This document shows, in pieces, positions 3,650 through 62,200 of a stretch of 64,000 nt of DNA. The DNA lies in the NCBI RefSeq assembly GCF_902713615.1, contig NW_024055852.1, positions 742,920 to 806,919 on the forward strand. Direction: 5' to 3'. The position numbers were made by a program, and so were the translations under genes. The notes under the pieces were generated by a model. It made no database searches, had not been told where the DNA came from, and was given only the letters and a program-made list of their open reading frames with translations. Position 1 is the first letter of the stretch. Each line of letters starts with the position of its first letter. Source of the DNA: Scyliorhinus canicula. Taxonomy: Eukaryota.

Positions 3650-3683
<34 letters not shown>
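3650..3683. repeat. (GA)n microsatellite
   Basis: Uninterrupted GA run. Confidence 0.95.
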
Positions 3684-3686
<3 letters not shown>

Positions 3687-7904: not shown

Positions 7905-7979
7905 TGACGTCACTCAGTTTACAGATCTACGTCACTAAATATGCAGGGAAACGTCACACGTGTCCTCAGTCTGACGTCA
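7905..7979. promoter_or_regulatory. Cluster of CRE/ATF sites upstream of a V gene
   Basis: Perfect TGACGTCA at 7905-7912 and 7972-7979 with two ACGTCA half-sites between; about 230-300 bp upstream of ATG 8207. Confidence 0.7.
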
Positions 7980-8206
7980 CAGTGACGGTGGTCTGCCGCG
8001 TGCGCATTCTCCTACCCACACTCCACCAATGCTGAAGCTCCTTCACAGCTTCACTTTGTGATCACACGTCTCAGAGACCTGGTTCGGGCGGGCACGGTGC
8101 AGTTGGTGTTGGACTCAGCTTGATATACAACAGCGCTGCCTCCGCAGCATTGTCTCTCGTCCTGAAAACTACCGAGAGTGCTTAACACAGATCGATAGGA
8201 TCCAAC

Positions 8207-8723: not shown

Positions 8724-8762
8724 CACAGTGAACTGAAAACCATTCAGCGCCGTACAAAAATC
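8724..8762 (+). promoter_or_regulatory. 23-RSS
   Basis: CACAGTG + 23 nt + ACAAAAATC. Confidence 0.93.
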
Positions 8763-9082
8763 TGCCGTGGTTATTCAGAAAGTGTGTCGCCTGTGCAGTC
8801 ATCAGAGAGCAGGCATTTTAGTAACACTCTTCCGTGGATACGTCCCAATGAGTGAGGCCTGTTCGTGATTTGAATTTCCTGTTTAGTATCAGAAAAGAAG
8901 GGCCAGAATCCATTTAAATTCAGTTTATGTTCTGTAGAAGTCACAACCAGAGAGCATGGGTTCGATGGTGCTTTAAGATAATAATCATTGTGCCGTTCGG
9001 TGAGTTAATATTCAAAGGTCGTTGTCTATTTCTTGTGTTAAATCAAATTCCTGACTTAGACACATTTTACGTTTTGTTACAG

Positions 9083-9240
9083 GAATGTGTGATGCACAAT
9101 GGGTCTCCCAGGATCCGGCCGAATTGAAAGCTCTGGAAAGACAGTCAGTAATGTTCAGCTGTAATCGCTCCACGTGCGAGAGCTTTCTCTGCCGATGTAG
9201 GCAGGTCAGTATTCTGTATAAGCTGCGAGATATTTACTGA
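9083..9240 (+). pseudogene. V relic, family C, 5' half
   Basis: After ttacag acceptor: WVSQDPAELKALERQSVMFSCN, then decays to TGA. Confidence 0.65.
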
Positions 9241-38106: not shown

Positions 38107-39177
38107 ATGACCAGATTCATTCAGCTCAATTTCACAACCTGCCTTTGTGTTTTTGTGCTTCTCTCTCACTCCCTATTTTCTGTTTTCAATCAGTTTCACA
38201 GGGTTTTCGAAGGGCAGGATTCAAAGATCTGGAAACTCAAACCAAGCATCACATCAGGATCTGACAGAGTCCTCAACTTATCACATCCTGAATATCATCG
38301 TACTTTGAACATGGAAGGAAAAAGCATTGTTCACAGTGGGGAGAAACCGAACACGTGTTGTGTGTGTGGACGAGGATTCGCTCGATCATCAGGCCTCACA
38401 AGCCACAAATGCAGTCACACTGAGGAGAAACCGTGGAAATGTGCGGACTGTGGGAAAGGATTCACTTCCCCATCCAAGCTGGAAACACATCGACGCAGTC
38501 ACACTGGGGAGAGGCCATTCACCTGCTCCAAGTGTGGGAAGGGATTTACTCAGTCATCCACTCTGTCCATACACCAGCGATTTCACTCCAGGGAGAGACC
38601 ATTCACCTGCTCCAAATGTGGGAAGGGATTCCCTCAGTCATCCGCTCTGTCTACACACCAGCAAATTCACACTGGGGAGAGACCATTCCCCTGCTCCAAA
38701 TGTGGGAAGGGATTCATTCAGTCATCCGCTCTGTCCACACACCAGCGAATTCACACTGGGGAGAGACCATTCACCTGCTCCAAGTGTGGGAAGGGATTTG
38801 CTATTTCATCCAACCTGCAGAAGCATCAGCGAGTTCACACTAATGAGAGACCGTTTCAATGTCCAGACTGCGGGAAGTGCTATAAAAGTTCTGGGGAACT
38901 GATGAGCCATCAACGTGTTCACACTGACGAGAAACCGTACACGTGCTCTTACTGCGGGACTGGGTTCAGACAATCATCTCACCTCACTGTACATCAGCGA
39001 ATTCACACTGGGGAGAGGCCATTCACCTGCTCTAAGTGTGGGAAGGGATTCATTCAGTTATCCAATCTGCAGAGGCACCAGCGAATTCACACTGGGGAGA
39101 AACCATTCACCTGTGAGTGTGGGAAGGGATTCACCACATCAATCCTCCTGCTGAGACACCAACGTGGCCATAAGTAA
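38107..39177 (+). CDS. C2H2 zinc-finger protein, 10 tandem fingers (likely ATG 38311 or spliced entry near 38194)
   Basis: Open frame with repeated C-x2-C-x12-H-x3-H and TGE(K/R)P linkers; no KRAB, SCAN or BTB domain visible in this exon. Confidence 0.92.
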
Positions 39178-39949: not shown

Positions 39950-40329
39950 GAGAGAAAGACAGACAATCCGGGAGCTTGGATCCAACACGGATACGTCCAG
40001 AAGACAAGGGTAGCAGCACAGTCATTATTTTATTTTTTTAAATTTAGAGTACCCAATTATATTTTTTTCCAATTCAGGGGCAATTTAGTGTGGCCAATCC
40101 ACTTAACCAACACATCTTTGGGATGTGGGGGTGAAACCCATGCAGACACGGGGAGAATGTGAAAACTCCACACAGTGGACCCAGGGCTGCGATTTGAACC
40201 CAGGTCCTCAGCGCTAAAGGAGCACAGTCATTACTGAGAAACAACAATACCTGCTGGAGACAAGACAGACAACTAGACAACACGAATCACAACACCAAGC
40301 TACCTGGACCCATATACGCGAGACAGGAA
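39950..40329 (+). mobile_element. Decayed Penelope-like RT, left part (target of the provirus)
   Basis: Joined across the TSD to 49742-49975 it reads DKG..V, FYLFPKIHK, RPI; contains a SINE with 13-bp TSD agcacagtcatta (40015-40027 and 40221-40233). Confidence 0.65.
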
Positions 40330-41388
40330 TGTTTTTCTAAATTCACCTCTCTGTTTTAGAATTCCCCTTATACCAAAGACCAAAAGGGCCAATATTCTAA
40401 AACGGCGAACAGGGATTCTCCCTCCCTGACTCCAGTACAGGCCTCTGTGAGTGCTATTCGGGTCAAACTCTCCTTTCAAGTTATCCCCCGGTATAACTCA
40501 TACCTTCACTGAAGAATTTTACTTACTTACCCCTTAATAGCATCGATGTCCCGGGTCCTGCGTTCTTAAGGAAGTGAAGTAAGCTAATAACCACTTTTTC
40601 AGGTTAAATTATTTTATTATTAACATACTCTTTTCTATTTCATTAAATTAAAAACATTATTTACTTTTGGATGTTGTCTGGTTGGTTGTTGAGGCCTTCA
40701 GACTCTCTCTCTCTCTCTTTCAATCCTCCTGGTCATCTCTCCTGGTGCTGTTTTCTCTTTTTCTCCTGGTCTTCTGTCTTCATTGGCTGCTGCTCCCTCG
40801 CATTCTTCTCCTGGGCCGTCTGCTCTTGGGTCTCTCCTGCCGCTGGGCCGCTCCTCTCCTGGGCCTTCCCGCTCCTGGGCCTTCCTGCCGCTGGGCCGTC
40901 TCGCTGCTGTCTCTTCTGCTTCTTCCTCCTTCTGGTGCCGCTGGTGTTCTGGTGCTGGTTTCTTTGTTCCTGCTGTTCTGCCTCGTGGGGAGAGAGAGAG
41001 GAGGAGCCCTGGAAGCCCGCACTGGCTGATCTCTTTGTTCCTGCTGTTCTGCCTCGTGGGGAGAGAGAGAGGAGGAGCCCTGGAAGCCCGCGCTGGCTGA
41101 TCTCTGGCGCGAGATCGGGACCTCCGATAAGGATCGGACTTCGGGTCTTAAAGGGGCAGTCCATCACAATTTTTCAACAGCACAAAGAAATTTTTTAAAA
41201 CTTTTTTCTTTTCCCTTTCTCCTGCTGCAGGTTGTAATAACCATTCTGATAGACTGAAATTGCTGCCCACAGTTTCTGTGCTCTTCAGCTGCCACCAACC
41301 TCTTGTGGGATCTTTCCCTGCACTCTCCCCGATCAGATATTGGCAGACCTCTATGTTTCAAATGACACATTCTGTATTTTCCAGAACA
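40330..41388 (-). repeat. 3' LTR (1059 bp)
   Basis: Matches 48683-49741; AATAAA at 40618-40613; TATA-like TTTAAG near 41150; internal 2 x 71-bp direct repeat 40961-41102; preceded by short purine tract AAGACGGGG. Confidence 0.96.
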
Positions 41389-42786
41389 CCCCGTCTTGAC
41401 ATTTGAAACATTACTATAATTTGGTTTATTGTCCCCCCATCCAATTGTACTAACATACATCCCTGATCATTGTCATTTGTATGCATATCACAGACCAGTG
41501 TCAATACGAGTCTTGTTTTCCGTTCCAGTCCAACTTGTTTTCCATTTCTGATTGGAATGTGGTAATTGTGATATCTTGTACCCCCCACTGATCCCCTTGT
41601 CTTATTAATTTAAAATGTTCAATTGATCCTGCTTGTATTCCTAACTTCCCCATTAATGTCTAACATTGTCGTGAATCATGTAAGTCTGCCAACCCCTGGT
41701 TTACATGAGAGAACATCTTTCTGACAACGTGTATATTTTTCATTTCAGCATTTACAAAACCACATTGAACCGTCTCTTTTTTTTTCTTCCCAAACAAATT
41801 CTCCCTATTGTTCTGTACATAGTAAAATTTTTATCTTATCTTAACACCTTATTCATTACCTAACCAATAGACTGTGTGTTACACTTTACGTATTTTCAAC
41901 TGTTAACAATTTAATATCAATATCGAAACATCGCTTCTTGGCTTTTTGGAACAATAATTATTACATACTAAACTAACCCTCTATTAAAACATTCACAGTT
42001 TAGAAATGCGGATCAAGTTATTTAACGACACACATACCCCCCGTATCATATATATACAACAGTCCCTATCAATTTACATGAAAATAAAAAAAATTTTCTT
42101 ATCAACGATTATAGCTCTTCAATGCAATATTGTTTTGTTGCATTGGTAACAATTTTCCCGCCGTAGTATCAAGCTACTAAAATTCTTAACCTATTATCAT
42201 TTATCATATTGGGGTTCCTCGTCAGTCGCTGCTATCTGCTGCCGAGACCTTAATGATTCCACCGCGTAGTACATACCCCATGGAGACCACAGATCATCCA
42301 TCAACTAATGTCCAGTTAGAGATGTCTGACCGGGGGTTTCACTGTCCAGTTATAATTTGATATTCTAATTTGTTTCTAACCCGTAAAGTTTTCCTCCGGG
42401 TTCTGTCATTTAATTCCCTCAAATTTGTAGCCAATTATATCATTAGTTTCCCCCCAATCCTGTCGAACAGATTCTTCTCTGGAGTGTAGTTCTCTTCCTT
42501 CTTGCGAACTGGTTTGTTATTGGAGTGTAGTTCTCTTCCTTCTTGCGAACTGGTTTGTTATTAATTTTTTCCACCTGAAAAAGCAAATGAACAGATCAAG
42601 GGTGGAGAGGGCCCTATTCTTTAATTCGGATTATCCCAGAAGTGCCCTCTCCAGGACTTCCGGATTCCTTTTGCCATCATTTCTTTTTGAACTGGTTTAT
42701 ATTCCATATCCTTGATGTACATCATACCATTAAGGCCTGTCAAGCCTCCTTCTGTCATTTCACCCCTGAGTGAGATTCGAAGAATC

Positions 42787-45700
42787 TCAAACTCCTCTGA
42801 TGCTCACTGGGTCGTGTGTTTCAAGCCTGAAACAATTTATTTTGCTCCAGACACCATGCTTCTCTAATTCAATTGTATGTGTACCCAGAATCTGAACAAT
42901 CTTGTCTTTACATTTTACAGTCTCACGAATGATTTTCCCCGCAGTCTTAGTTGGTAACTTTACCCAAACTTCGTCTCCTACTTGATAATTCCCAGATTCA
43001 CTTGGGTCTCCTTGTCCCTGGGGGACAGAGGTTCCAAGGTTGCTATTAAGATCAAATACTATTCTTTCAATGTCTTTATCCCAGCCTTTATTATTCTGAT
43101 TCTTTATGATCCAATCCTTTACTTTTCTTACAGACCTCTCAGCCATTCCATTACTCTCAGGTGCATATTTCACGGCCCAATTGATTGTTATTCCTCTGTC
43201 AGCACAAAAGTTAATAACAGTATTGTTTCTAAAGTGTGGCGCGTTGTCCATTCGGATCGATTCTGGTCTACCTCTGGAGGTCATCATTTCTGCCAATACC
43301 CTTTTGGTTGTGGCTCCATTTGCTTTGCTGGTTGCTCTAAGGTCACTTTCTCCCGTGCAGCTATCAGCTTTGACTAAAAAATACAAATTACCTTTGCTGC
43401 TTCTGGGAAAAAGTGGTCCTGCATAATCTAATGACCATTCCTGCATTGGTTTCTCAGTTTTTATGCTCCCATATGTTTTATTTCCTCTCTGTCCTCCACA
43501 GGCCATACATCTCTCACATTTTCTCCTTACTGCAGTTAAATGTTGTCTCCAATAGGCTATTTTAATTCCCAACTTCTTCAACTCCCTTGCGACTACAACA
43601 TGACCCCCATGTCCTGTGGCTTCATGTACTTGCTTAATTATCATTTGATGGTCGGCTGCTGAGTTCCCAAGAGTCCCCAAGATTATTGTCCTAAGTCTGG
43701 CTAATTCATCCACTTCCTGATTCCCCTTACACAGTTCCCCAATTCCTTTTGTGTGTGCTTTTTGATGAATTGTCTGGATCTCCATATCGGCTAAAATTTT
43801 ATCTATCTCTTCCCACTGTTCTTTCTGTTCCAGTAGTTTATTTCTACCGTTCGTCCAACCGTTTAGTTTCCAAAACTCCAAATCTTTCTCCAATCCTTGC
43901 TGCACGAAAAAGCTATCGGTTACAACGGTAACTTCCTGCAGCTTTCGCTGGTGACACTCCTTTAACCCTTGCAATACTCCCTCTACCTCAGCTGTCTGAG
44001 CTGATCCAATGATTATTCCCTGTTCCTCCACTACTATGTTTCCTGAATTTTTTAAAATGAATGCCCATCTGGCTTGTTCTTCGTCCTTCTTGACTTTACT
44101 ACCATCAGTATATAATACCCAAGCATTCACCAACTCCGTTTTACTAACTGGCTCATCAAGTTTCTGTCCCTTTTGAATGTTATGAACAAACATTAAGTCA
44201 GGGTTTAGAAGAATGGTTTCCCATCTTTCCCATCGAGCTGTATTCGCGCCTTGCTGGCAAATCTGTCTCTTGGTTAGCTCCTTTAACTCCAAAAACTCAG
44301 TTGTGACATAAATTTTCTTACCACCCGACAAGTTTTCTATCTCTGCTATTCTCTTTGTTATAGCTGCTAGGCATTTCTCGATGTTTGAAAACTTTTGTTC
44401 AGCTCTCGACCAGTTTCCTGTCAGATGTTTGATAGGTGTCTGATTGCTAAGATTAGCAAGTACCATACCATATCCATTTTTATAGATGTCTAATTTAATG
44501 CTTAAATCATCCTCTTCTTGTCTCCCAACTAATGACCCCGATATCGCAATTGCTGTCTTTAACTGATCTAACCCTCTCTGGGCCTCGCTGGTCCAAATAA
44601 AATCCCCTTTCAAGGTTTGATAAATGGCTTTAGCATAGAGGCTGAAGTCCTTCACTACTGGCCTTAGATATCCCAACATTCCCATTATTTTTTGAACCCC
44701 TTTTTTCGAAACAGGCGCAGTAATTTCAGCTATCTTCTTCCTCATTTCAATACTGGCCTCTCTACCTTCCTTCGATACTGAATAACCCAAATAGTTGACT
44801 TCGCTTCTCCCAATTTGACATTTCTTTAGCCCTATTTTAAAGCCTGCTTCGCTAAGTGTCTTAATGATCCTGGCCACTCTTTCCACATGTTTGTCCTGAT
44901 CGTCATCTCCAATTAATATATCATCGATATATACTAAAGCCAAATCATCTTGAATCAGCTCCCTGATTATTGCCTGAAAGTGATTTGGAGAATTAACATA
45001 TCCCTGTGGAAGTCTACAATATACATAATGCTTAGTTCCAAAGGTGAATGCTGTTTTCTCCCTGCTGTCTGGGTCTAATGGAACACTCCAGAATCCATTC
45101 GCCAAATCTATACTAGTTAAGTAAGTTTTTCCCGCGACTTGCTCTAAGGTAGCTTGTGGACTTATTAAATATCTCTTGTCCTTCTTTGTGACTTTATTTA
45201 AAGCTTTGTAATTTGTTACCATTCTAAATGTACCATCTGGTTTTCTTACTACCTGAAGTGGACTATTTGTTGAGGCATATGTGACCCCTTGAATAATCCC
45301 CTGCTGCTCCAATTCCTTGATTATTATCTCCAGCTCGCTCTTAGCTCCTCTAGGCAAAGGATACTGTTTTTGAGGTCTGTGTTGTCCCCCGTGAATTGCG
45401 TGTTGAAATTGCTGGCTAATCAAACCTGTGTCATTCTTACCTATCGCTAGGTTTGCTCCCATCAGTACTTCTTCCATCTTCTTCCAAGCTTCGTCATTTA
45501 AAATACTTTTCTCTTTCTGTTTCCTTATTTCCTCCATGTTATCAATTGGTTTTAATACCCTTATTTTTCCAGTATCTATTTTTATTAAATCTTTCCCTGC
45601 CATCAGATTATCAGTTCCTGATATTGCCAGTAATTCTCCCAATCTAACTTCTGGTCTAATATCCTTATTCCCTAATGCTCCTTCTACTATGTATTTCTTT

Positions 45701-45855
45701 CCTGTCGGATTTCCAGCTTCTTCCCTTATCATTGATATCTCAGCCCCTGTGTCCACTATAAATCTTTCCCCCTTGTATACTACTACTAATTCTCCTTTGT
45801 CTGTTTCTGTTGTTAGATTTTGTATAGCCTGTTTAAGGGGAGAAGCCGAATCCTG
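42787..45855 (-). CDS. pol: Pol polyprotein (protease, RT, tether/degenerate RNase H, RNase H, integrase); 1022 open codons following the gag stop
   Basis: DTGA; DLANGFW, RLPQGYVNSP, YIDD; LYTDGS/AEVE/TDS/VDELA; H-x4-H..C-x2-C; LDYAGP, MDN-x35-E. Frame open 33 codons upstream of the called GTG start. Confidence 0.96.
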   Translation of the reverse strand, partial: QDSASPLKQAIQNLTTETDKGELVVVYKGERFIVDTGAEISMIREEAGNPTGKKYIVEGALGNKDIRPEVRLGELLAISGTDNLMAGKDLIKIDTGKIRVLKPIDNMEEIRKQKEKSILNDEAWKKMEEVLMGANLAIGKNDTGLISQQFQHAIHGGQHRPQKQYPLPRGAKSELEIIIKELEQQGIIQGVTYASTNSPLQVVRKPDGTFRMVTNYKALNKVTKKDKRYLISPQATLEQVAGKTYLTSIDLANGFWSVPLDPDSREKTAFTFGTKHYVYCRLPQGYVNSPNHFQAIIRELIQDDLALVYIDDILIGDDDQDKHVERVARIIKTLSEAGFKIGLKKCQIGRSEVNYLGYSVSKEGREASIEMRKKIAEITAPVSKKGVQKIMGMLGYLRPVVKDFSLYAKAIYQTLKGDFIWTSEAQRGLDQLKTAIAISGSLVGRQEEDDLSIKLDIYKNGYGMVLANLSNQTPIKHLTGNWSRAEQKFSNIEKCLAAITKRIAEIENLSGGKKIYVTTEFLELKELTKRQICQQGANTARWERWETILLNPDLMFVHNIQKGQKLDEPVSKTELVNAWVLYTDGSKVKKDEEQARWAFILKNSGNIVVEEQGIIIGSAQTAEVEGVLQGLKECHQRKLQEVTVVTDSFFVQQGLEKDLEFWKLNGWTNGRNKLLEQKEQWEEIDKILADMEIQTIHQKAHTKGIGELCKGNQEVDELARLRTIILGTLGNSAADHQMIIKQVHEATGHGGHVVVARELKKLGIKIAYWRQHLTAVRRKCERCMACGGQRGNKTYGSIKTEKPMQEWSLDYAGPLFPRSSKGNLYFLVKADSCTGESDLRATSKANGATTKRVLAEMMTSRGRPESIRMDNAPHFRNNTVINFCADRGITINWAVKYAPESNGMAERSVRKVKDWIIKNQNNKGWDKDIERIVFDLNSNLGTSVPQGQGDPSESGNYQVGDEVWVKLPTKTAGKIIRETVKCKDKIVQILGTHTIELEKHGVWSKINCFRLETHDPVSIRGV

Positions 45856-48075
45856 TCAATATATACCGGGGCCTCCTCTGCCTCCTCCTCGGAATCCCCC
45901 TCGCAAGCGTCCCGGATACCCTTCTGGTGGTTGATATCTACCTTGCTCAATCCTCCCCTGACCAGCTGCTCTTCTTCTCCTATCCTCAATGAATCTGTCT
46001 CTTTCCTCCCGACTGAGGGCTAGGAATTGTTCCCTTGGTAAATAATCTAGATTTTGTGGTGGAGGTGGCCCTTGTGACCGCAAATTATACCCATGTTGTG
46101 GCATTGCTGGTTGTGCTGGATTCTGTTCCGATTTGTCAGGTATCTGTCGGTTTGGTGGTCTAATCTGAGCATTTTGTGTTGAAACATTATTTTGGGCAGC
46201 TGCTCTTTTTTGTTCCCCTTTTGTGTGTTTATCCTTAAATGCTTTGCCTGCCAAATCCAATTTAACCAGTTCTCTTCCTATTTCTCTTCTAGAGGTCGTT
46301 AACAGTATTGTTGAGAGGCTTTTTCCTCCTGGAATCTTGGATCCTAATTCCCTCAGGAATCTGACTACATCGACCCCCTCTTCCTTATTAACCTCATATA
46401 TTCGGTCGATATATGGTGTGAGGTGTTCCCCTGCATATGCTGCCTCTGTCATCTCTTTCATTAAATTAGCTCTCTCATTTCCCAAATCTAACTCATTTAT
46501 TAAATCTGAGACTTCGCCTGTAACTATTTCTCCCACTGTATGTAAATCAATCAATTTGGTGGATTCTCCTGATGCCCCCATTTTCTTCGCTAACTGTTTT
46601 AACCTCTGTGAATACTCAACTCTACTCTCCCCATGTTTCTTTGGGCCTGCTGTCTTCATTACGGCTGCTACTATTTTATACGGTACCATGCCTCCCTGTC
46701 CTTCCTCTGGACCTGGTGTAAATGACTGAACTATTTTCTCACTTCTGGGGCATGGTGTTCTCAAAGGGGCACCTCTATCTGGGTCCCTATATTCGGAGAA
46801 ATGTATCCGTCGTCGTACCGGTTCTTCCTCAAAATAGGGGGTACTATGTTGTGCAAACTCTTCCACCGATTCTATATATTCTTCAAACCTTGCACTTGGT
46901 ACTTGGCTATCTCGTGGAGCATAACTTGCCCTATCCATTGGAGTAGGAGCAGTTTTTTGGGGTCTTGGACGATTCTGTATCCTTTCCTGTGGTCTTAATG
47001 CTGCTATTATCTGGCCTTGTGTTTCTGTGCTGTTCCTTACCCTACTCATGGCTCTTCCGAAACTGTCATACCCTTTGCTCATTTGCCAAATTTTAGCTTT
47101 GGGGGTAACGTTTGGTAATTCTAGTAATTTCGTAGAATCAATTTGTTGACTTCCTCCTATTATTTCTCCTATTTTAAGTCCCCTAGCTGTAACCTCTCTT
47201 TCCCATCCTTCCTGATCTCTATGGTGTACCATTTCTGCTTCTGGATTATAAATATAATACGGTACATCCTTATTTACTGGTTGATAAGTGGAAGGTTGTT
47301 GTTGTTTCCAGTGATCGCTATAATCCCCTATTTCTAATGGTTTAGAATTTTTTCTATTCCCTATTCCTCTCTTTTGTTTGACTATTTCCTCATTCTCGGA
47401 TGAGGATGATAATTCTTCCTGTCCCATCACAGGAGGCGCCATAATCCCAACTATGCCTTGTTCCTCTTCACTTTCTTGTGGTTCAAAGAAATGATCGATA
47501 AACGCTTCTTTCTTATGTGTGGCAGATTGCTGAGGCCAATTTTCTTCCTGAAACAGACTTGGCTCTGGGTATTGAAAATTGTATCCCGTTGGGAAATTTT
47601 CACAGGGGTCCGAATTCTCTCGGCTATCTGATTCTAGGCCTGATTCCTCGTCACTTTCCATTTCTAATGGTTCATTTTTCTGCAGTTGTTTTATATATTT
47701 GCCTACCACTTCAGAGTTACTTTTGTGTTTACTAGGGATCTGTATTATTTCTGTCCTGTTTACTCCGTCAATGATTTTAATCAGTTTGGAACACACTTTG
47801 CCCACTTGAGCAGCTGCATGCTTCTGTCTGTGTCCAAATACGATTAGTGATTCAGCTCGCTTTTCAAATGCAAACTGACAAAGTGCTTTAAGGACCCTGA
47901 CAGAATCTGTATATTGCAGGGCTTTTGGCACTCTAACAAAGAGGGAGATATCTCCGTCTGGATACATATCTCTTGTCCAGGATTTCTTTTGCTCTTTTAA
48001 TTTCTTCCATTCCCTTTTCATTTCTACATTTCTCTTGACCGTATCCCAGGGCATGAGAATTACCCTAATTGCCAT
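45856..48075 (-). CDS. gag: Gag-like polyprotein, 739 aa from ATG 48075
   Basis: Long ORF between PBS and pol; AAAATGG Kozak context; acidic and proline-rich middle; Gly/Arg-rich C-terminus; no CCHC knuckle. Identity is by position, not a recognised motif. Confidence 0.85.
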   Translation of the reverse strand: MAIRVILMPWDTVKRNVEMKREWKKLKEQKKSWTRDMYPDGDISLFVRVPKALQYTDSVRVLKALCQFAFEKRAESLIVFGHRQKHAAAQVGKVCSKLIKIIDGVNRTEIIQIPSKHKSNSEVVGKYIKQLQKNEPLEMESDEESGLESDSRENSDPCENFPTGYNFQYPEPSLFQEENWPQQSATHKKEAFIDHFFEPQESEEEQGIVGIMAPPVMGQEELSSSSENEEIVKQKRGIGNRKNSKPLEIGDYSDHWKQQQPSTYQPVNKDVPYYIYNPEAEMVHHRDQEGWEREVTARGLKIGEIIGGSQQIDSTKLLELPNVTPKAKIWQMSKGYDSFGRAMSRVRNSTETQGQIIAALRPQERIQNRPRPQKTAPTPMDRASYAPRDSQVPSARFEEYIESVEEFAQHSTPYFEEEPVRRRIHFSEYRDPDRGAPLRTPCPRSEKIVQSFTPGPEEGQGGMVPYKIVAAVMKTAGPKKHGESRVEYSQRLKQLAKKMGASGESTKLIDLHTVGEIVTGEVSDLINELDLGNERANLMKEMTEAAYAGEHLTPYIDRIYEVNKEEGVDVVRFLRELGSKIPGGKSLSTILLTTSRREIGRELVKLDLAGKAFKDKHTKGEQKRAAAQNNVSTQNAQIRPPNRQIPDKSEQNPAQPAMPQHGYNLRSQGPPPPQNLDYLPREQFLALSREERDRFIEDRRRRAAGQGRIEQGRYQPPEGYPGRLRGGFRGGGRGGPGIY

Positions 48076-48500
48076 TTTCGGATTTTTAGTTCTGTTCCTG
48101 GTTGTCCCTTTCAGGTGCACTCTGAAATTAAGGATAAGTACCCTTTCTGGGCCCTATCCAAGGCTGACCAAGGCACTATCTTCCTGCTTTAGTTAAGGGT
48201 CGATTGATTATTGGTTTCTGAAGATAAGCGTCCCTATTTTCCAGAAAATGTCCGCACAATCTGCCTTACCCTGAGGATGATTTATTCTTTAGCCCCTTTT
48301 ACCAGTAATGGATGCAAGATTTTAGTGCTGTCACCAAAATGTCTTGCAGACTTTTCTCGGGGTCAGTATCTTCTAGTCTACTGATTTTCACACCCAACCT
48401 GAGCTTCTGTCCCCTCGATCCACAGAATATCCTTACAAAAGCCAATCACACATGACTTTCCAGACTAAACTCGGCAGGTAAAGTCTGACTCACACATAGA

Positions 48501-48663
48501 CTAGAAACTTCTAATATTCTAGCCTTTGTGCCGGTTAGAAACTTCTAATATTCCAACCGTTTCTTGGGAACTAGAAACTTCTAATATTCTAGCCCCTACT
48601 CTTCTTAACTAGAAACTTCTAATATTCTAGCCTCGCTTTACCTAGAAACTTCTAATATTCTAG
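48501..48663 (-). repeat. Five 22-nt hairpin repeats with invariant 10-nt loop, directly 3' of the PBS
   Basis: Copies at 48501, 48535, 48571, 48609, 48642; RNA CUAGAA-UAUUAGAAGU-UUCUAG; spacers 12, 14, 16, 11 nt. Confidence 0.92.
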
Positions 48664-48664
48664 G

Positions 48665-48682
48665 CCTCCACGCTGGGCGCCA
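48665..48682 (-). promoter_or_regulatory. Primer-binding site, tRNA-Lys(CUU)/Lys1,2-like
   Basis: TGGCGCCCAGCGTGGAGG directly after the LTR CA; 15/18 to TGGCGCCCAACGTGGGGC, and one difference is a G-U wobble. Confidence 0.85.
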
Positions 48683-49741
48683 TGTTTTTCTAAATTCACC
48701 TCTCTGTTTTAGAATTCCCCTTATACCAAAGACCAAAAGGGCCAATATTCTAAAACGGCGAACAGGGATTCTCCCTCCCTGACTCCAGTACAGGCCTCTG
48801 TGAGTGCTATTCGGGTCAAACTCTCCTTTCAAGTTATCCCCCGGTATAACTCATACCTTCACTGAAGAATTTTACTTACTTACCCCTTAATAGCATCGAT
48901 GTCCCGGGTCCTGCGTTCTTAAGGAAGTGAAGTAAGCTAATAACCACTTTTTCAGGTTAAATTATTTTATTATTAACATACTCTTTTCTATTTCATTAAA
49001 TTAAAAACATTATTTACTTTTGGATGTTGTCTGGTTGGTTGTTGAGGCCTTCAGACTCTCTCTCTCTCTCTTTCAATCCTCCTGGTCATCTCTCCTGGTG
49101 CTGTTTTCTCTTTTTCTCCTGGTCTTCTGTCTTCATTGGCTGCTGCTCCCTCGCATTCTTCTCCTGGGCCGTCTGCTCTTGGGTCTCTCCTGCCGCTGGG
49201 CCGCTCCTCTCCTGGGCCTTCCCGCTCCTGGGCCTTCCTGCCGCTGGGCCGTCTCGCTGCTTTCTCTTCTGCTTCTTCCTCCTTCTGGTGCCGCTGGTGT
49301 TCTGGTGCTGGTTTCTTTGTTCCTGCTGTTCTGCCTCGTGGGGAGAGAGAGAGGAGGAGCCCTGGAAGCCCGCGCTGGCTGATCTCTTTGTTCCTGCTGT
49401 TCTGCCTCGTGGGGAGAGAGAGAGGAGGAGCCCTGGAAGCCCGCGCTGGCTGATCTCTGGCGCGAGATCGGGACCTCCGATAAGGATCGGACTTCGGGTC
49501 TTAAAGGGGCAGTCCATCACAATTTTTCAACAGCACAAAGAAATTTTTTAAAACTTTTTTCTTTTCCCTTTCTCCTGCTGCAGGTTGTAATAACCATTCT
49601 GATAGACTGAAATTGCTGCCCACAGTTTCTGTGCTCTTCAGCTGCCACCAACCTCTTGTGGGATCTTTCCCTGCACTCTCCCCGATCAGATATTGGCAGA
49701 CCTCTATGTTTCAAATGACACATTCTGTATTTTCCAGAACA
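48683..49741 (-). repeat. 5' LTR (1059 bp)
   Basis: Same length as the 3' LTR; only differences found are 49262/40909 and 49374/41021; donor-like G|GTAAGT at 48883. Confidence 0.96.
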
Positions 49742-50739
49742 GGAAGGAGAATTGGAGACAGATTGGAAGAACTCAGACTCCAGGCACATTAACCAAAAAC
49801 AGATGGAATATCTGAGGGGACAACAGGTCGAACTAAGGAAGTTCTACCTGTTCCCTAAAATACACAAACACCCAACGCATGGACAGTACCAGGGAAATAT
49901 CCCCATACAGACCCATCAGATCAGACTGTGAGAGAGAAAAATCCTACTGAATAGCTGAAACATCAACACACTGCTACCTGTAGTTTTTAAAATAAATTTA
50001 GAGTATCCAATTCATTTTTTCCAATTAAGGGGAAATTGAGTGACCAATCTACCTACCCTGCACATTTTTGGGTTGTGGGGGCAAAACCCACGCAAACACG
50101 GGGAGAATGTGCAAACTCCACATGGACAGTGACCCAGAGCCGGGAACGAACCTGGGACCTCAGCGCCGTGATGCAGTAATGCTAACCACCGTGCTGCATC
50201 TGCTCCTGGTAGTTGATGGAATAGTGGTTCAATAAATATAATTTGTGGATTAAAAATGTGTGTAATATAGAGTAAAAACAGGAAATAATAATCATATTTA
50301 TTATTGTCACAAGTAGGCTGACATTAACACTGCAATGAAGTTGCTGTGAAAATCCCCTAGTCACCACACTCCGGCGCCTGTTCGGGTACACTGAGGGACA
50401 ATTCAGAATGTCCAAATTACCTAACAGCACGTCTTTCAGAACTTTGGGAGGAAACCAAAGCACCCGGAGGAAACCCACGCAGACACAGGGAGAATGTGCA
50501 GATTCCGCACAGTGACCCAAGCCGGGACTCAAACCTTGGACTCTGAAGCTGTGAAGCAACAGTGGTAACCACTGTGCTACGGTGCTGCCCGATGCTGGAT
50601 GAACTCAACAGGTTTGGCAGCATCATAGAATCCCTACAGTGCAGAAGGAGGCCATTAGGCCCATCGAGTTAGCACTAACTATACAAAAGAGCACCCCACC
50701 CAGGTGTACTTACCATGTCCTCTCCCCATAACCCCAAAA

Positions 50740-51680
50740 GGAGAGGCACAAGGACACCGGCACCATGGACAAACCGTGGAAATGTGGGGACTGAGGGAAG
50801 GGATTCCTATCCCCGTCTGTGCTGGAAATCCATCGGCGCAGTCACACCGGGGAAAGGCCATTCACCTGCTCCGAGTGTGGGGAGAGGTTCACTCGACTAA
50901 CCCCCACCTCACTACACACCAACTTGTTCACTCTGACACCAAACCTTTTAAATGTTCCGACTGTGAGAAGAGCTTTAAAAGAAAAGAACATCTGCTGACA
51001 CACCAGCGAGTTCACACCAGGGAGAGGCCGTACACCTGCTCTGAGTGTGGGAAAGGATTCACTCAGTTATCCAGCTTTCTGTTACACCAGCGAGTTCACA
51101 CTGGGGAGAAACCAGTTGCCTGCCCAAATGTGGGATGGCATTCACTCAGGTACGCAAACTGTTGGATCACCAGCGAGTTCACACTGGGGAGAGACCATTC
51201 ACTTGTTCTGTGTGTGGGAAGGGATTCACTCAGTTATCAATCCCGATGAGACACCAGAGCATTCACACTGGGGGGGGGGGGGGGGGGGGGGGGGGTTGGG
51301 GAAACCATTCACCTGCCTGAAGTCTGGGAAGGGATTCACTCAGTCTGCCCACCTCACTTCACACCAACGTGTTCACTCTGACACGAGACCTTTTAAATGT
51401 TCCGCCTGTGAGAAGAGCTTCAAAGGCAAAATGGATCTGCTGATTCACCAGCGCAGTCACACTGGAGAGAGGCCATTCACCTGCTCCGTGTGTGGGAAGG
51501 GATTCACTCAGCATTCCCTCCGGCTGAAACACCAGCGCATTCACACCAGGGAGGGAGCGTTTATCTGTTCCCTTTGTGGGAAGGGATTCATTCGGTCATC
51601 TACCCTGCAGACACACCAGCGAGTTCACAAGTGCCTCCAGGACTCTGCTGTTATTGATGTTAATTACATCCAGGACTGAG
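50740..51680 (+). pseudogene. C2H2 zinc-finger pseudogene (frameshifted)
   Basis: Fingers split across ORFs 50704-51249, 51045-51320 and 51047-51679; 26-G run at 51270-51295 within a linker; extra finger fragment 51900-52050. Confidence 0.85.
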
Positions 51681-56569: not shown

Positions 56570-58170
56570 CCACCAATCAAAAAGAACAAAGAACAAAGAA
56601 AATTACAGCAGAGGAACAGGCGCTGATCCAGATCCTTTATCTAAACCTGTTGCCTATTTTCCAAGGTCTACTTCTCTCTGTTCCTCACCCGTTCATATAT
56701 CTGTCCAGATCAAGGGTGGGCAAACTTTTCCGTGCAAGGGCCACATTCAGAAATTCACAATTTTAAAGGGCCGCATAGTATATTAAGTAAAATAATTACT
56801 TCACCCAGTTATGATTCTGGGCGCCTCATATAGAACATAGAACAGTACAGCACAGAACAGGCCCTTCGGCCCTCGATGTTGTGCCGAGCAATGATCACCC
56901 TACTCAAGTCAACGTATCCACCCTATACCAGTAAGTAACCCAACAGCCCCCCCATTAACCTTAAAAAAAAAAAAAAAATTTTAACTTTTTTTTAATGACT
57001 TGATCTTGGTGGGCCGCATAAAGACCTTTGGCGGGCCGCATGCGGCCCACGGGCCGTAGTTTGCCCATCCCTGATCCAGATGCATCTTAAATGATGCCAT
57101 CGTACCCACCTCTACCACCTCTGCTGGCAAAGCATTCCAGGCACCCACCACCCTCTGCGTAAAACACTTTCCAAGTACATCTCCCTTAAACTTTTCCCCT
57201 CTCACCTTGAAATCGCAACCCGTTATAACTGACACCCCCGCTCTTGGAAAAAGCTTGTTGCTATCCACCCTGTCCATACCTCTCATAATTTTGTAGACCT
57301 CAATCAGGTCTCCCCTCAACCTCCGTTTTCCAATGAAAACAATCCTAATCTACTCAACCTTTCTTCATAGCTAGCACCCTCCATACCAGGCAACATCCTG
57401 GTGAACCTCCTTTGCACCCTCTCCAAGGCATCCACATCCTTCTGGTAATGTGGCGACCAGAACTGCACGCAGTATTCCAAATGTGGCCGAACCAAATTCC
57501 TATACAACTGTAACATGACCTGCCGACTCTTGTACTCAATACCCCGTCCGATGAAGGCAAGCATGCTGTATGCCTTCTTGACCACTCTATCCACCTGCGT
57601 TGCCACCTTCAGGGTACAATGGACCTGAATCCCCAGATTTTTCTGTACATCAATTTTCCCCAGGACTCTTCCATTGACCATATTGTCTGCTCTTGAGTTA
57701 GATCTTCCAAAATGCATCACCTCGCATTTGCCTGGATTGAACTCCATCTGCCATTTCTCTGCCCAACTCTCCAATCTATCTATATTTTGCTGTATTCTGA
57801 CAGTCCCCGCCTCACTATCTGCAACTCCACCAATCTTAGTATCATCTGCAAACTTGCTCATCAGACCACTTATACCTTCGTCCAGATCATTTATGTAGAT
57901 CACAAACAACAGTGGTCCGAGCACGGATCCCTGTGGAACACCACTAGTCACCCTTCTCCATCTTGAGACACTCCCTTCCACCACTACTCTCGGTCTCCTG
58001 TTGCCCAGCCAGTTCTTTATCCATCTAGCTAGTACACCCTGAACCCCATACGACTTCACTTTTTCCATCAACCTGCATGGGAAACTTTATCAAATGCTTT
58101 ACTGAAGTCCATGTATATGACATCTACAGCCCTTCCCTCATCAATTAACTTTGTCACTTCCTCAAAGAAT
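56570..58170 (-). mobile_element. CR1/HER1-type LINE RT fragment interrupted by a hAT element
   Basis: ORF 57316-58071 with GVPQGSVLGP, FADD and RPHLEYC; frameshift into 56981-57319. Confidence 0.88.
56711..57073. mobile_element. Non-autonomous hAT (Charlie-like) DNA transposon
   Basis: TIRs CAAGGGTGGGCAAAC / GTTTGCCCATCCCTG; 8-bp TSD gtccagat / atccagat (7 of 8); GGGCCGCA subterminal motifs. Confidence 0.85.
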
Positions 58171-58559: not shown

Positions 58560-59281
58560 AACAGCAGCAACAACAGCTGAATCCAAACCCTGCTGTTACC
58601 TGTGAACTTGCTGATGTCTGTGTAGGTTGTTTGACTGAGTGAATCTCCTCCCACAAATGGAGCAGTTGAACAGCCTCTCCCAGTACCGCTCCCACGTGTG
58701 GGTGACATGGTAGCACAGTGGTTAGCACCGTTGCTTCACAGCTCCAGGGTCCCAGGTTTGATTCCCGGCTTGGGTCACTGTCTGTGCGGAGTCTGCACTT
58801 TGTCCCAGTGTCTGCGTGGGTTTCCTCCGGCTGCTCCGGTTTCCCCCCACAGTCCAAAGATGTGCAGGTTAGATGGATTGGCCATGCTAAATTGCCCTTA
58901 GTGTCCAAAAAGGTGAGGTGGGTTATGGGTTAGGTTGGAGGTATGGGCTTAAGTCAGGTTCTCTTTCCAAGGGCCGGTGCACTCGATGGGCCAAATGTCC
59001 TCCTTCTGCACTGTAAATTCTATGATTCTGTTTCAGTGTGAACTCGTTGGTGTTTCAGCAGATTCTGTTTACTTTTAAAGCTCTTCTCAGTCAGCACATT
59101 TAAAAGGTCTCTGATCAGTATGAACAAGTTGATGACTCAGGAGTGATGACCGAGTGAATCCCTTCCCACACACGGAGCAGGTGAATGGCCTTTCCCCAGT
59201 ATGACTGCGTTGGTGGAACAGTAAATCCTTTCTGCTTTTAAAGCTCTTCTCACAGTCAGCACATTTAAAAGGTCTCTCATC
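58560..59281 (-). pseudogene. C2H2 zinc-finger gene 3' part, disrupted by L1 (at 59282) and a SINE (58703-59030)
   Basis: [30 protein letters not shown]..; 3' end resembles 51620-51710. Confidence 0.8.
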
Positions 59282-62200
59282 GAGCTTCCGGTGGCGGCGA
59301 TGATCAGGTAAGCCGCACGTTCGGCGGCTCCCGCGGAGAACGGACTTTGGGGATCTTTTCAGGGCCCCCAACGAAGCTGCAGCGGCAAACCCCAACGGGG
59401 GAAGAAGGCAGGAGTTGACCCCGACGGTCCTATGGTCCGGACCAGGAGCGGGGCAGGAAGAAACCCGAGGAAAGTGCCTCTGAAAAAACGGGGGCAGGAA
59501 GAAAAAATGGCGGCCGGAGAAGGCCTCGAGGAGCTGAGGAAGTGGGCCCAGGAGCAGCAGGCGATTCTGCTGCGCTGCTTCCAGGAGCTGAAGTTGGAGC
59601 TGCTGGAGTCCCTGAAGGTAACCAACAGGGAATTGATGGAGACCCAGACAGCCCAGGGGGCTGCGATCCGGGAGCTGCAGCAGCAGGCCTCCGCAAGGTA
59701 GGATGAGGCCGTGGCTGTCGCGGGGAAGGTGGAGATGCACGAGGCGCTCCATAAAAGATGGCAGGAGCGGTTCGAGGAGCTGGACAACCGGTCGAGGAGG
59801 AAGAATTTGCGGATCCTGGGCCTCACGGAGGGGCTGGAGGGGTCGGACCTAGAGGCCTATGTGGTGATCATGTTAAACTCGCTGATGGGGGCTGGGTCCT
59901 TCCAGGGGCCCCTGGAGTTGGAGGGGGCCCACAGAATTCTGGCTAGGAGGCCCAAGCCAAACGAGCCGCCGCGGGCGGTGTTGGTGCGGTTTCATCGGTT
60001 CGTGGATCGTGAGTGGGTGCTCCGGTGGGCCAAGAAGGAGCAGAGCAGCAAGTGGGAGAACACGGAGGTGCGGATCTTCCAGGACTGGAGTGCGGAGGTG
60101 GCGAGGCAGAAGGACGGGTTTAACCGGACAAAGGCAGTGCTCCATAGACGGAGTGTGAAGTTCGGCATGTTGCAGCCGGCGCGTCTCTGGGTCACCCATA
60201 AGGATCAGTACCATTATTTTGAGTCCCCGGAGGAGGCGTGGGCCTTTGTGCAGGCCGAGAAATTGGACTCAAACTGAGGGTCTAAGATGGGGGATGCTGT
60301 ATTTTTTTTAAAAATTTAGATTACCCAATTATTTTTTCTATTAAGGGGCAACGTAGTGTGGCCAATCCAACTACTCTGCACATTTTTGGGTTGTGGGGGC
60401 GAACCCCACGCAGACACGGGGAGAATGTGCAAACTCCACACGGACAGTGACCCAGAGCCGGGATCGAACCTGGGACCTCAGCGCTGTGAGGCGGTTGTGC
60501 TAACCACTAGGCCACCGTGCTGCCCTGGGGGATGCTGTATAATACTGTATTTGTATTTGCTTGGTTTAATGTAAGATGTGGGTGGGTGGGTGGGGTGATG
60601 TCGATTTGTCTTTTCTATATGGGTTTTTCTGTAGGGGTCTGGTAGATGGGTTCGGGCTGGGGGTAAACGGGGAGTTCGGGGAGCTGATGGGGGGGACTGA
60701 CAATGGGAGTTGCCCTAGAGGATGCGGGGCCAGGCAGGGTGAAAGCATGGGCTTTCTGAGGGTTTCCCGCGCTGGGAGATGGTGGGGGCAGGGTCGGGGC
60801 TGAGAAGCGCGGGTTGTTGCTGTCTGTTTTCTTTTCCCGCGCAAGAGCGGGGGTGGGGGGGGGGGGTGGAGGAGGACCCATTGACAGGCTCGATGGAGGA
60901 GGGGTAGTCCCACGTGGGGAGGAGTCGGAGGTAGGGTGGGAGTCGCCGGGGTCAGAGGTTAGCTGGCTCACGGGAGTGCTTTGGAGGGAGGGGCGCGGCT
61001 AGGAGGGGTCCTAGCCTGGGGGGGGGGGGGTACAGGGTTGCTGCTGAAACGGTCAGGAAGGAGCTGGAGGATGCAGGGGGTGCTGGAGGGGGGGGAGTTG
61101 CCGCCGTGGGGAACTGGCCGGTGGTGGGCAGGGGATGGGTTATGGCTAATCGGCAGGGGAGGGGGGCAGGGAGCCCTCTGATCCGGCTGATAATCTGGAA
61201 TGTGAGGGGGCTGAATGGGCCGGTCAAACGGGCCCGGGTGTTTGCGAACTTGAAGGGGCTGAAGGCGGATGTGGCCATGCTCCAGGAGACACACCTGAAA
61301 GTGGCGGACCAGGTTCGGCTGAGGAAGGGATGGGTGGGCCAAGTATTTCACTCAGGGCTGGATGAGAAGAGTAGGGGCGTGGCGATCCTGGTGGGGAAGA
61401 AAGTGTTGTTTGAGGCGTTAAACGTGATGGCTGACAGTGGCGGGAGATATGTGATGGTGAGTGGCAAGCTGCAGGGGGAGCGGGTGGTGTTGGTGAATGT
61501 TTATGCCCCAAATTGGGACGATGCGGGGTTTATGCGGCATATGTTGGGCCGCATTCCGGACCTGGAGGTGGGGGGCCTGATCATGGGGGGGAACTTCAAC
61601 ACGGTACTGGATCCCCCATTGGATCGATCCAAGTCCAGGACGGGTAGGAGGCCGGCGGCGGCTAAGGTGTTGAAGGGATTTATGGACCAGGGTGGATCCC
61701 TGGAGGTTTGCGAGGCCAAGGGCCAGGGAGTACTCATTTTTCTCCCACGTACATAAGGCCTACTCGAGGATTGATTTTTTTGTCCTGAGCAGGGGGTTGG
61801 TTTCGAGGGTGCAGGATGTGGAATACTCCGACATTGCCATTTCAGATCATGCCCCGCACTGGGTGGACGTAGGGCTGGGGGAAGAGAGGGACCAACGTCC
61901 GCTCTGGCGCTTGGAGGTGGGGCTGATGGCAGATGAGGAGGTGGCTGAGAGGGTTCGGGGGTGTATCGAGAGGTACCTTGAGGCCAATGACAACGGGGAG
62001 ATCCGAGTGGGGACGGTCTGGGAGGCATTGAAGGCGGTGATGAGGGGGGAATTGATCTCCATCCGAACCCATTGGGAGAAGGGAGAGCAGAGGGAGAGAC
62101 TGATAGGGGAGATGGTGAGGGTGGATAGGAGATATGCGGAGGCTCCAGAGGAGGGATTGCTGGGGGAGAGGAGTAGCCTTCAGGCCAGATTCGACCTATT

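Follow-up and report, generated by a model that had tools for sequence, protein, structure and literature searches.

We found a complete provirus of 9,412 bp on the minus strand (40330–49741) of the window, the whole 64,000-nucleotide stretch of catshark DNA that was analysed. It probably belongs to an env-less family of foamy-like endogenous retroviruses (ERVs; class III, fish-type FLERV) in Scyliorhinus, either the published ERV-Spuma.0-Sca or a sister subfamily of it, and is a full-length copy that integrated recently. Foamy-like ERVs of cartilaginous fishes underpin the argument for an ancient marine origin of retroviruses, and on the shark branch they were previously represented mostly by pol fragments (Callorhinchus) or by a consensus (catshark). 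A natural unbroken copy reveals the layout on that branch: a small genome, no env, and a pol that is apparently reachable only via gag. The positions of all features are collected in Table 1.

Table 1. Annotated features of the catshark provirus, with positions numbered along the window
Feature	Position	Strand	Details
Target-site duplication, left copy	40326–40329	none	GGAA, 4 bp
3' LTR	40330–41388	minus	1,059 bp, TG..CA
Post-pol region	41389–42786	minus	1,398 bp, 37% GC, non-coding
Polypurine tract	41389–41397	minus	short, ending in a G-run
pol	42787–45855	minus	1,022 codons + stop, in frame with gag
Integrase	42790–43656	minus	zinc-binding N-terminal part, DDE core, C-terminal part
RNase H	43696–44124	minus	Pfam RNase_H; best solved relative is foamy virus RNase H
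Tether (degenerate RNase H-like domain)	44209–44595	minus	Pfam RT_RNaseH_2 / RT_RNaseH
Reverse transcriptase	44596–45384	minus	pol residues ~158–420; Pfam RVT_1 203–359; YIDD
Protease region	45481–45798	minus	approximate bounds; DTG at pol residue 35
gag stop	45856–45858	minus	TGA, then C; proposed read-through site
gag	45856–48075	minus	739 codons + TGA, 0 internal stops
Gag C-terminal Gly/Arg-rich tail	45859–45978	minus	residues 700–739, RGG repeats
Gag stretch similar to a marine-metagenome foamy-like element	45991–46602	minus	residues 492–695; pairwise BLASTP
5' leader	48076–48664	minus	primer-binding site to gag ATG
Primer-binding site, tRNA-Lys-like	48665–48682	minus	adjoins the 5' LTR directly
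5' LTR	48683–49741	minus	1,059 bp
Target-site duplication, right copy	49742–49745	none	GGAA, 4 bp

The original prediction had described a 9412-bp provirus with 1059-bp LTRs and a 4-bp target-site duplication (TSD), and all three figures hold; the minus-strand orientation was absent from it. The two LTRs have TG..CA ends and are identical at 1,057 of 1,059 positions (2 mismatches), and GGAA flanks the element on both sides. The LTR divergence of 0.19% corresponds to an insertion age of about 0.5–1.9 Myr, a range set by the assumed rate. On this measure the provirus is a young, recently integrated copy, as had been proposed. AATAAA is found at LTR position 771, and no canonical TATAAA is present in the LTR. 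The insertion site lies in a zinc-finger gene cluster and otherwise looks like that of any young ERV. Neither a second copy nor a solo LTR occurs in the window, Rfam returned no real match within the element, and no relative of it was found among the viral contigs searched.

The cis-acting signals are of the foamy type: a 4-bp TSD, a probable Lys-type primer-binding site (PBS), and a GGGTG motif formed by the end of the polypurine tract and the start of the LTR. This junction is known from foamy viruses and fish foamy-like ERVs (PMC5210030). The PBS had been called Lys1,2-like. It agrees at 15 of 18 bases with the tRNA-Lys PBS printed for AciFLERV, and its first 8–9 bases are also common to the tRNA-Asn-type PBS (PMC5512871 supplement). 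Hence, a tRNA-Lys-like PBS is the best, though tentative, reading of the site, with the leading bases common to both types.

Both genes are open throughout, with no internal stops or breaks in pol and none in gag, and the expected catalytic residues are in place, as the original prediction had stated. The protease DTG and reverse transcriptase (RT) YIDD motifs are visible directly, the acidic residues of RNase H emerge from alignment with foamy RNase H, and the zinc-binding His/Cys and D,D,E residues of the integrase (IN) emerge from alignment with PFV integrase. Pol carries a dual RNase H, that is, a tether and a separate RNase_H domain. Gag lacks a CCHC zinc knuckle (Cys-His box) pattern and ends in a Gly/Arg-rich tail, also as anticipated: Gly and Arg together make up 55% of the final 40 residues, and three RGG/GRG motifs are present. 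Searches of Pfam, PDB sequences and a word-indexed protein set, and phmmer against all fetched relatives, found no Gag homologue. The sole Gag stretch with detectable similarity to a relative, residues 492–695, overlaps a predicted helical block and shows a weak, collinear match to a foamy-like element from a marine metagenome, at the C-terminal end of that element's gag-like ORF (BLASTP, 28% identity, E 9e–5). AlphaFold without an alignment gave a pLDDT of 44 for the whole of Gag and 59 for residues 440–640, and a Foldseek search of PDB returned nothing below E 0.3. No protein identical to the gag or pol product is on record.

The element is not a new lineage, because a foamy-like family of this kind is already catalogued in catsharks. 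ERV-Spuma.0-Sca is a published S. canicula family whose consensus derives from 293 catshark hits (Song et al. 2023, PMC10699275). In the available part of that publication the consensus and our provirus agree in layout: gag and pol share one frame, gag is of about equal size (2,259 versus 2,220–2,265 nt here), the pol ATG-ORF has 2,946 nt in both, the distance from the gag stop to the pol ATG is 123 nt in both, and neither an ORF nor an env domain is listed for the ~1.4 kb behind pol. The host genus also fits our nearest proteins, which are Scyliorhinus torazame fragments with 87–90% identity. At the nucleotide level the comparison covers the first 400 nt of the consensus, the coding part being matched by layout alone; the LTRs start with 17 identical nt, and by eye they can be aligned over the first ~80 nt and over a later 12-nt block. 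However, the sequences diverge strongly after ~80 nt, the consensus LTR measures 866–869 bp versus 1,059 bp here (193 bp longer than 866), and the total length is 9,220 versus 9,412 nt. The published sequence is also a consensus, whereas ours is a single natural intact copy. ERV families are usually delimited at ~80% nucleotide identity over the whole element. Since the LTRs differ (1,059 versus 866 bp), the provirus probably represents a separate subfamily. Near-identity to a catalogued family, which the original prediction had named as a ground for giving up its claim, is thus nearly what we observe: the architecture is that of ERV-Spuma.0-Sca and the LTRs are different.

The post-pol region fills the position that env and accessory ORFs occupy in relatives, and ORF and Pfam searches of the provirus found neither env nor genes of the tas/bet type. 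There is no ORF of more than 76 codons between pol and the 3' LTR (1,398 bp), which agrees with the predicted lack of env or tas/bet-sized ORFs; the short ORFs have no Pfam match, and stop density and the longest open stretch resemble those of shuffled sequence. The post-pol ORFs of three relatives match nothing in the element, a comparison of low power because these ORFs are unlike even each other. Judging from a post-pol region like shuffled sequence beside intact gag and pol and 99.8% identical LTRs, and from a consensus with a similar gap, the env-less state is probably old. Song et al. labelled this part of the consensus an 'env CDS' by position, while here it is non-coding, which corrects the positional annotation in the literature.

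A different reading sees the provirus as what a deletion left of an infectious, env-bearing foamy-like virus, unable to spread alone and, in the manner of non-autonomous ERV derivatives, copied in trans by full-length relatives. Two distant relatives (L002 and L004) carry several large post-pol ORFs, one of 1,088 residues with hydrophobic segments near both ends, so an ancestor probably had env, and the 1.4 kb behind pol could be what remains of that region. However, gag and pol are complete and unbroken, which removes any dependence on others for those proteins, and neither env-like similarity nor a long open stretch is left behind pol. In the 293-hit catshark consensus the stretch behind pol is equally short, and the available part of its description names no ORF there; no env-bearing catshark copy is known. 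We therefore consider a deletion derivative unlikely. It departs from our preferred explanation only in how copies exit the cell.

The affinity of the preferred env-less foamy-like family is set by Pol. Against solved structures, the protease–RT–RNase H part scores 279 bits with foamy PR-RT, 151 with Ty3 and 100 with MLV-type RT; the integrase has PFV integrase as its best match (2e–15), and RNase H has foamy RNase H (5e–11). Among all proteins, protease, RT, RNase H and integrase are each best matched by pols of fish foamy-like ERVs. In a simple neighbour-joining RT tree, whose references include no lokiretrovirus, Odin, epsilon or gamma sequences, the element falls in a clade with feline foamy virus, a Callorhinchus pol and teleost foamy-like pols (92–95% bootstrap). 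The clade leaves out Ty3/gypsy, an ERV-L-like bird pol (P0014) and a frog NYNRIN-like pol. RT identity to exogenous foamy viruses is 31–33%. The prediction of a foamy-related, retrovirus-like element is borne out by these data.

The original prediction went further and suggested that the element may come from a deep-branching, uncatalogued lineage close to lokiretroviruses or Odin elements, and a foamy resemblance that is only superficial would have to be assumed for such a separate lineage. Several observations lean this way: the catshark pair is the earliest branch inside the foamy/foamy-like clade (74% support, neighbour-joining), some Ty3/gypsy-type integrases and the frog NYNRIN-like pol outscore feline foamy virus integrase, and Odin elements likewise have a dual RNase H and no env (PMC9040795), a layout common to any env-less retrovirus. 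However, a separate integrase group, distinct from that of tetrapod foamy viruses, is already described for fish endogenous foamy viruses (PMC7947760), and the top integrase, RNase H and protease matches are all fish foamy-like pols. The frog pol is itself a candidate lokiretrovirus, because lokiretrovirus integrase is reported to be closest to CGIN1/NYNRIN (PMC7947760), and it stays outside the RT clade that joins our element to feline foamy virus and fish foamy-like pols. Odin elements, whose RT, RNase H and IN are sister to those of lokiretroviruses, are reported from sea anemones only, while the nearest proteins here are from catshark. Lokiretroviruses themselves have an RT that branches outside all canonical retroviruses. 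Their defining env, related to Mononegavirales fusion glycoproteins (PMC9040795), is missing here. Song et al. group the catshark family with AciFLERV and AliFLERV in the part of their work available (PMC10699275). With the RT inside the foamy/foamy-like clade of a tree in which the frog pol is the candidate lokiretrovirus, and with an architecture matching that of ERV-Spuma.0-Sca, a separate deep lineage is very improbable, and this part of the original prediction is not supported.

The provirus might also be taken for an ordinary LTR retrotransposon of the Ty3/gypsy type (Metaviridae). Such an element would share the gag-pol-only layout, Ty3 is the second-best solved RT, and most database matches below the top tier are Ty3/gypsy pols, but this identity is hardly credible and was rejected on domain content, bit scores (279 versus 151) and the RT tree: the tether is accompanied by a separate RNase_H domain, where Ty3/gypsy elements have a single RNase H; Pfam finds no Integrase_H2C2 (PF17921), typical of gypsy integrases, and no chromodomain, which they often carry; the TSD, the junction and probably the PBS follow the foamy pattern; and all sampled Ty3/gypsy pols split from the element at 99% bootstrap, so that nesting inside ordinary Ty3/gypsy clades, the other outcome held to count against the original prediction, was not seen.

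Within the foamy-like family, the junction between gag and pol deserves separate consideration. As had been predicted, pol lies in frame behind a single stop; it begins directly after the gag TGA. The pol frame has its first Met at residue 42, downstream of the protease DTG. Because no ATG precedes the protease active site, read-through or another form of Gag-Pol fusion would be required, and Pol is apparently producible only as a read-through extension of Gag. We found no stimulatory RNA structure after the TGA: the minimum-energy fold of 119 nt, modelled without pseudoknots, is no better than those of shuffled sequences (z = –0.74). Pol may therefore be made instead from a spliced mRNA whose ATG comes from upstream. 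The marine-metagenome foamy-like relative (fish type) similarly has no usable start before its protease, with pol in the –1 frame and a 280-nt gag/pol overlap, which suggests that Gag-Pol fusion may be usual in the fish-type foamy-like group.

Under the proposed mechanism, the 5' LTR would drive a full-length RNA serving as both genome and mRNA, from which ribosomes would make Gag and occasionally pass the TGA-C stop to yield Gag-Pro-Pol. The Gly/Arg tail of Gag would replace the zinc-knuckle nucleocapsid, a host tRNA would prime reverse transcription, and integrase would insert the new copy, duplicating 4 bp of the target. Lacking env, copies might spread in germline cells like a retrotransposon or borrow the envelope of another virus. 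Tentatively, we put forward as a possible reading that the provirus is a living or very recently living element of the foamy lineage, a fully intracellular retrotransposon with Pol made as a Gag-Pol read-through fusion. Taken with the gag/pol overlap of the fish-type relative, this would imply that Gag-independent Pol arose late, on the tetrapod side, and that early foamy-like viruses relied on Gag-Pol fusion, as retroviruses ordinarily do. The non-coding 1.4 kb behind pol and the lack of an ATG before the protease active site, with the fusion it implies, are both under-described in print. The provirus thus offers a concrete case for asking when separate Pol expression arose in foamy viruses.

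Apart from ERV-Spuma.0-Sca, the known systems close to the element include the fish FLERVs (AciFLERV, AliFLERV, DrFV and others), whose Pol is nearest in every domain and whose integrase is of the same fish type. The element has in common with them a 4-bp TSD, the GGGTG junction and probably a tRNA-Lys-type PBS, as well as a Gag that lacks a Cys-His box, ends in a G/R(Q)-rich stretch and has almost no detectable homology (PMC5512871, PMC5210030). However, fish FLERVs are 15–17 kb long, encode env and as many as four accessory ORFs, and have a gag of 1,100–1,400 codons, whereas the element has 9.4 kb, gag and pol only, and a gag of 739 codons. In the FLERV-type marine-metagenome relative pol overlaps gag in the –1 frame, while here it lies in frame behind a stop. 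Among solved structures, PR-RT-RH, RNase H and IN each match exogenous foamy viruses best (Spumaretrovirinae; for example feline foamy virus Pro-Pol and PFV integrase), and these viruses also share with the element the TSD length, the junction motif, a Gly/Arg-rich Gag and probably the type of PBS. They translate Pol from a separate spliced mRNA that has a start codon of its own, and they carry env, tas, bet and an internal promoter; none of these appears to be present in the catshark provirus. Gamma- and epsilonretroviruses resemble it in having gag and pol in one frame with a single stop between, which implies read-through, and in the 4-bp TSD, but their RT is far more distant (~100 bits versus 279 for foamy), and the element has no zinc knuckle, no env and no evident structure downstream of its TGA stop. 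The original prediction had regarded the element as a mosaic of foamy and non-foamy traits. The in-frame pol and the missing env stand, but the contrast is weaker than proposed, since the metagenome relative is also fusion-like and env-less class III ERVs such as ERV-L are well known. ERV-L pol contains a dUTPase, for which Pfam gives no match in the catshark provirus; ERV-L hosts are mammals, and the ERV-L-like bird pol lies outside the element's clade. In what is available of its description, ERV-L (MuERV-L / HERV-L) is nevertheless the closest functional analogy: a foamy-related, env-less gag-pol element that multiplied inside the genome (PMC5930517).

The provirus occupies 9,412 bp of the minus strand. 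Its two LTRs start with TG and end with CA when read on the element strand, differ at 2 positions over 1,059 bp (direct-repeat search and extension), and GGAA is found on either side of the element as a 4-bp duplication. A short G-terminated purine run abuts the 3′ LTR and, together with the LTR start, makes up a GGGTG junction. No internal stops or frameshifts were found in gag (0) or pol (0). The LTR divergence (K = 0.0019) corresponds to an insertion age of 1.9 Myr at 0.5e–9, the rate assumed by Song et al. for S. canicula, or 0.5–0.9 Myr at faster rates. Judged by its sequence, the element is a natural, intact and young copy of a catshark foamy-like ERV family.

Features of the provirus and its surroundings, in window positions
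Feature	Position	Strand	Description
3′ LTR	40330-41388	-	1,059 bp; direct-repeat search and base-by-base extension
5′ LTR	48683-49741	-	1,059 bp; direct-repeat search and base-by-base extension
Primer-binding site	48665-48682	-	18 nt, immediately 3′ of 5′ LTR
gag	48075-45856	-	739 codons, then TGA
pol	45855-42787	-	1,022 codons, frame shared with gag
ATG-initiated pol ORF	45732-42787	-	2,946 nt
Post-pol region	up to 3′ LTR	-	1,398 bp; longest ORF ≤76 codons on element strand
Purine-rich direct repeat	42531-42544, 42490-42503	-	14 nt, 41 nt apart
Antisense LTR ORFs	40671-41198, 49024-49551	+	175 codons, ATG start
C2H2 zinc-finger ORF	38107-39177	+	one side of provirus
C2H2 zinc-finger ORFs	50704-51679	+	two overlapping frames
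C2H2 zinc-finger ORF	59087-59752	-	
ORF with partial RVT_1 match	57316-58071	-	251 codons
Predicted tRNA-Val (TAC)	2660-2734	+	
Predicted tRNA-Val (TAC)	3150-3222	-	
GC-rich segment	60001-64000		GC up to 0.58, G-over-C skew +0.38

No second copy or solo LTR of the element was found within the 64-kb window. C2H2 zinc-finger ORFs flank the element on both sides, which puts it, in antisense orientation, within a zinc-finger gene cluster; the two overlapping frames have the appearance of a single gene with a frame change. The ATG ORF running antisense through each LTR has no Pfam match and is probably a chance ORF. Elsewhere in the window, a further ORF partially matches RVT_1 (profile 89–194), shows no similarity to the provirus in the window self-comparison, and is probably a fragment of another, unrelated retroelement. 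The two predicted tRNA-Val genes, in opposite orientation and ~400 bp apart, could be real genes or tRNA-derived repeats. The last 4 kb differ from the remaining window in base composition, and Pfam recognizes none of the several long mechanical ORFs located in this stretch.

Fish FLERVs have a tRNA-Lys primer-binding site, 4-bp duplications, a GGGTG junction, and a Gag that lacks Cys-His boxes and ends in a Gly/Arg(/Gln)-rich stretch (PMC5210030, PMC5512871). The duplication, the junction and both Gag traits recur in the element. Its primer-binding site matches the published AciFLERV site at 15 of 18 positions, and the leading bases are also common to Asn-type sites (PMC5512871 supplement), which makes the tRNA-Lys assignment less certain. 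The anatomy in the original prediction (LTRs, duplication, unbroken gag and pol, no env- or tas/bet-sized ORFs) was borne out, with the minus strand to be added and the primer assignment to be softened.

Gag contains four cysteines and no CCHC pattern, and 55% of its last 40 residues are Gly or Arg, with RGG repeats. No Gag homologue was found in Pfam, among solved structures or in the protein database, or by phmmer against the fetched relatives. Residues 492–695 align weakly and collinearly with the C-terminal end of the gag-like ORF (1,387 residues) of L002, a 15.4-kb foamy-like contig from a marine metagenome (28% identity, E-value 9e–5), which suggests a shared origin for these segments. 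Structure prediction without an alignment placed a putative helical block at ~464–631 with low confidence, and a fold search with the predicted structure returned nothing meaningful.

Pfam recognizes RVT_1, an RNase-H-like tether, a true RNase_H and an integrase core in pol. Against all solved structures, the PR-RT-RH portion scores 279 bits with foamy virus PR-RT, versus 151 for Ty3, ~100 for MLV/XMRV-type RT and 50–68 for HIV RT. Searched alone, the integrase is closest to PFV integrase (2e–15, next retroviral integrases ~1e–4), to which it aligns at the zinc-binding and D,D,E residues, and the RNase H is closest to foamy RNase H (5e–11), with aligned acidic residues. Across 1.84 billion representatives, an exhaustive HMMER scan returned two close matches, fragments of 501 and 184 residues (90% and 87% identity), both annotated in the cloudy catshark, Scyliorhinus torazame; this points to a Scyliorhinus species or a very close relative as the host. 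The next tier reaches only 28–39% identity and comprises teleost pols (Coilia, Zoarces, Nothobranchius, Scortum, Xyrichtys), a Callorhinchus milii pol, marine-metagenome and read-archive pols, and feline foamy virus Pro-Pol. When protease, RNase H and integrase were queried separately, the fish foamy-like group was the best match for each. Feline foamy virus ranked only 107th for the integrase query, which fits the separate integrase group formed by fish endogenous foamy viruses (PMC7947760). Overall, the domains agree in typing the element as a fish-type foamy-like ERV.

Neighbour joining on the RT-plus-tether region (82 sequences, 414 columns) pairs the element with S. torazame (100%). Feline foamy virus, Callorhinchus, teleost and metagenome pols join this pair in a clade (92–95%), within which the pair is the earliest branch (74% support). 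This clade, together with a bird ENS-3 pol (whose PDB ranking makes it ERV-L-like) and a frog 'NYNRIN-like' pol, is separated from all sampled Ty3/gypsy pols at 99%. The earlier suggestion of a lineage near Odin or lokiretroviruses is not supported by the present evidence and the sequences sampled. Two dozen 'NYNRIN-like' frog proteins (P0179 cluster; Aquarana catesbeiana, Lithobates pipiens) are full retroviral pols with RT, RNase H and integrase. Gamma-type, Ty3 and foamy RTs match them with roughly equal scores, and they may be lokiretrovirus pols. Several marine metagenomes (L001, L002 and L003; Tara Oceans and other contigs) also share a recurrent foamy-like genome, 15.4 kb or more in length. 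All its ORFs are open, including the gag-like one, which has a weak Macro-domain match, and a 1,033-residue pol, and seven cluster members have equal-length pols. This genome represents either an ERV carried by some abundant marine fish or a fish foamy-like virus in circulation.

How Pol is expressed can be approached from the gag–pol boundary. gag ends in TGA with C as the next base, and C after UGA is a leaky stop context in eukaryotes. The frame remains open past the stop, with the protease DTG (pol residue 35) ahead of the first methionine (residue 42). A product initiated at this methionine would miss the active site of the protease, so Pol must be reached from gag. Read-through of the TGA, yielding Gag-Pro-Pol as in gamma- and epsilonretroviruses, would be the simplest route. 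We lean only modestly towards it, because no convincing RNA structure was found 3′ of the stop (z = –0.74, fold without pseudoknots) and a splice might possibly lend pol an upstream ATG. Exogenous foamy viruses make a separate spliced pol mRNA, unlike the route through gag that we infer here. In L002, pol lies in the –1 frame relative to gag and stays open for 280 nt into gag, and the called pol start codon immediately precedes DTGA. By this parallel, Gag-Pol fusion may be the rule among foamy-like elements of the fish type. In that case, the mosaic of foamy and non-foamy traits seen in the original prediction, with pol in frame behind one stop, would rather look like the ordinary state of the branch. 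That Pol is probably accessible only through gag is a point worth keeping.

The foamy-like ERV family that the element represents is already in the literature. Song et al. (2023) mined 12 cartilaginous fishes, with 293 hits in the small-spotted catshark, and grouped the 9,220-nt consensus ERV-Spuma.0-Sca in the foamy clade alongside AciFLERV and AliFLERV (PMC10699275). Its annotation gives LTRs at 1–866 and 8352–9220, with gag (1538–3796) and pol (3920–6865) both assigned to 'frame 3'; the 'env CDS' (6989–8314) does not appear among the listed ORFs, and the domain table shows no env domain for it (PMC10699275). A search of the supplement showed that the first 17 nt of the element LTR are the exact start of this consensus. 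The two share one frame for gag and pol, an ATG-initiated pol ORF of 2,946 nt, and 123 nt between gag stop and pol ATG. However, LTR lengths differ by 193 bp, and similarity between the LTRs is confined to the first ~80 nt and a small number of blocks further on (by eye, first 400 nt of the consensus). Compared by layout and these 400 nt, we place the element in the same family, probably in a different LTR subfamily. The S. torazame proteins GCB70404.1 and XP_072373651.1 (P0121 and P0135), which carry host-protein annotations ('hypothetical' or 'ribonuclease H-like'), are fragments of the pol of this family. No hits were reported in S. torazame (PMC10699275); hence, the host range is wider than published.

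The post-pol region holds 93 stops over three frames versus 111 ± 7 in shuffles, and its longest open stretch is 73 codons versus 63 ± 15; it thus behaves as non-coding DNA. It also contains a purine-rich direct repeat. No env remnant was recognized by Pfam in its short ORFs. In more distant relatives, large post-pol ORFs are present: of 514, 1,088 and 472 residues in L002, the 1,088-residue one with hydrophobic segments near either end, and of 527, 243 and 358 residues in L004. The element region shows no similarity to these ORFs, a weak test as they are also mutually dissimilar. Env was probably once present in the lineage. Its loss predates the making of this copy, given unbroken gag and pol and 99.8% identical LTRs, and the ERV-Spuma.0-Sca consensus has a post-pol region of similar size. 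That the supposed env region is non-coding here is also worth keeping. Env-less ERVs multiplying within a genome are well known, and ERV-L, likewise foamy-related, is the closest analogue of the element (PMC5930517).
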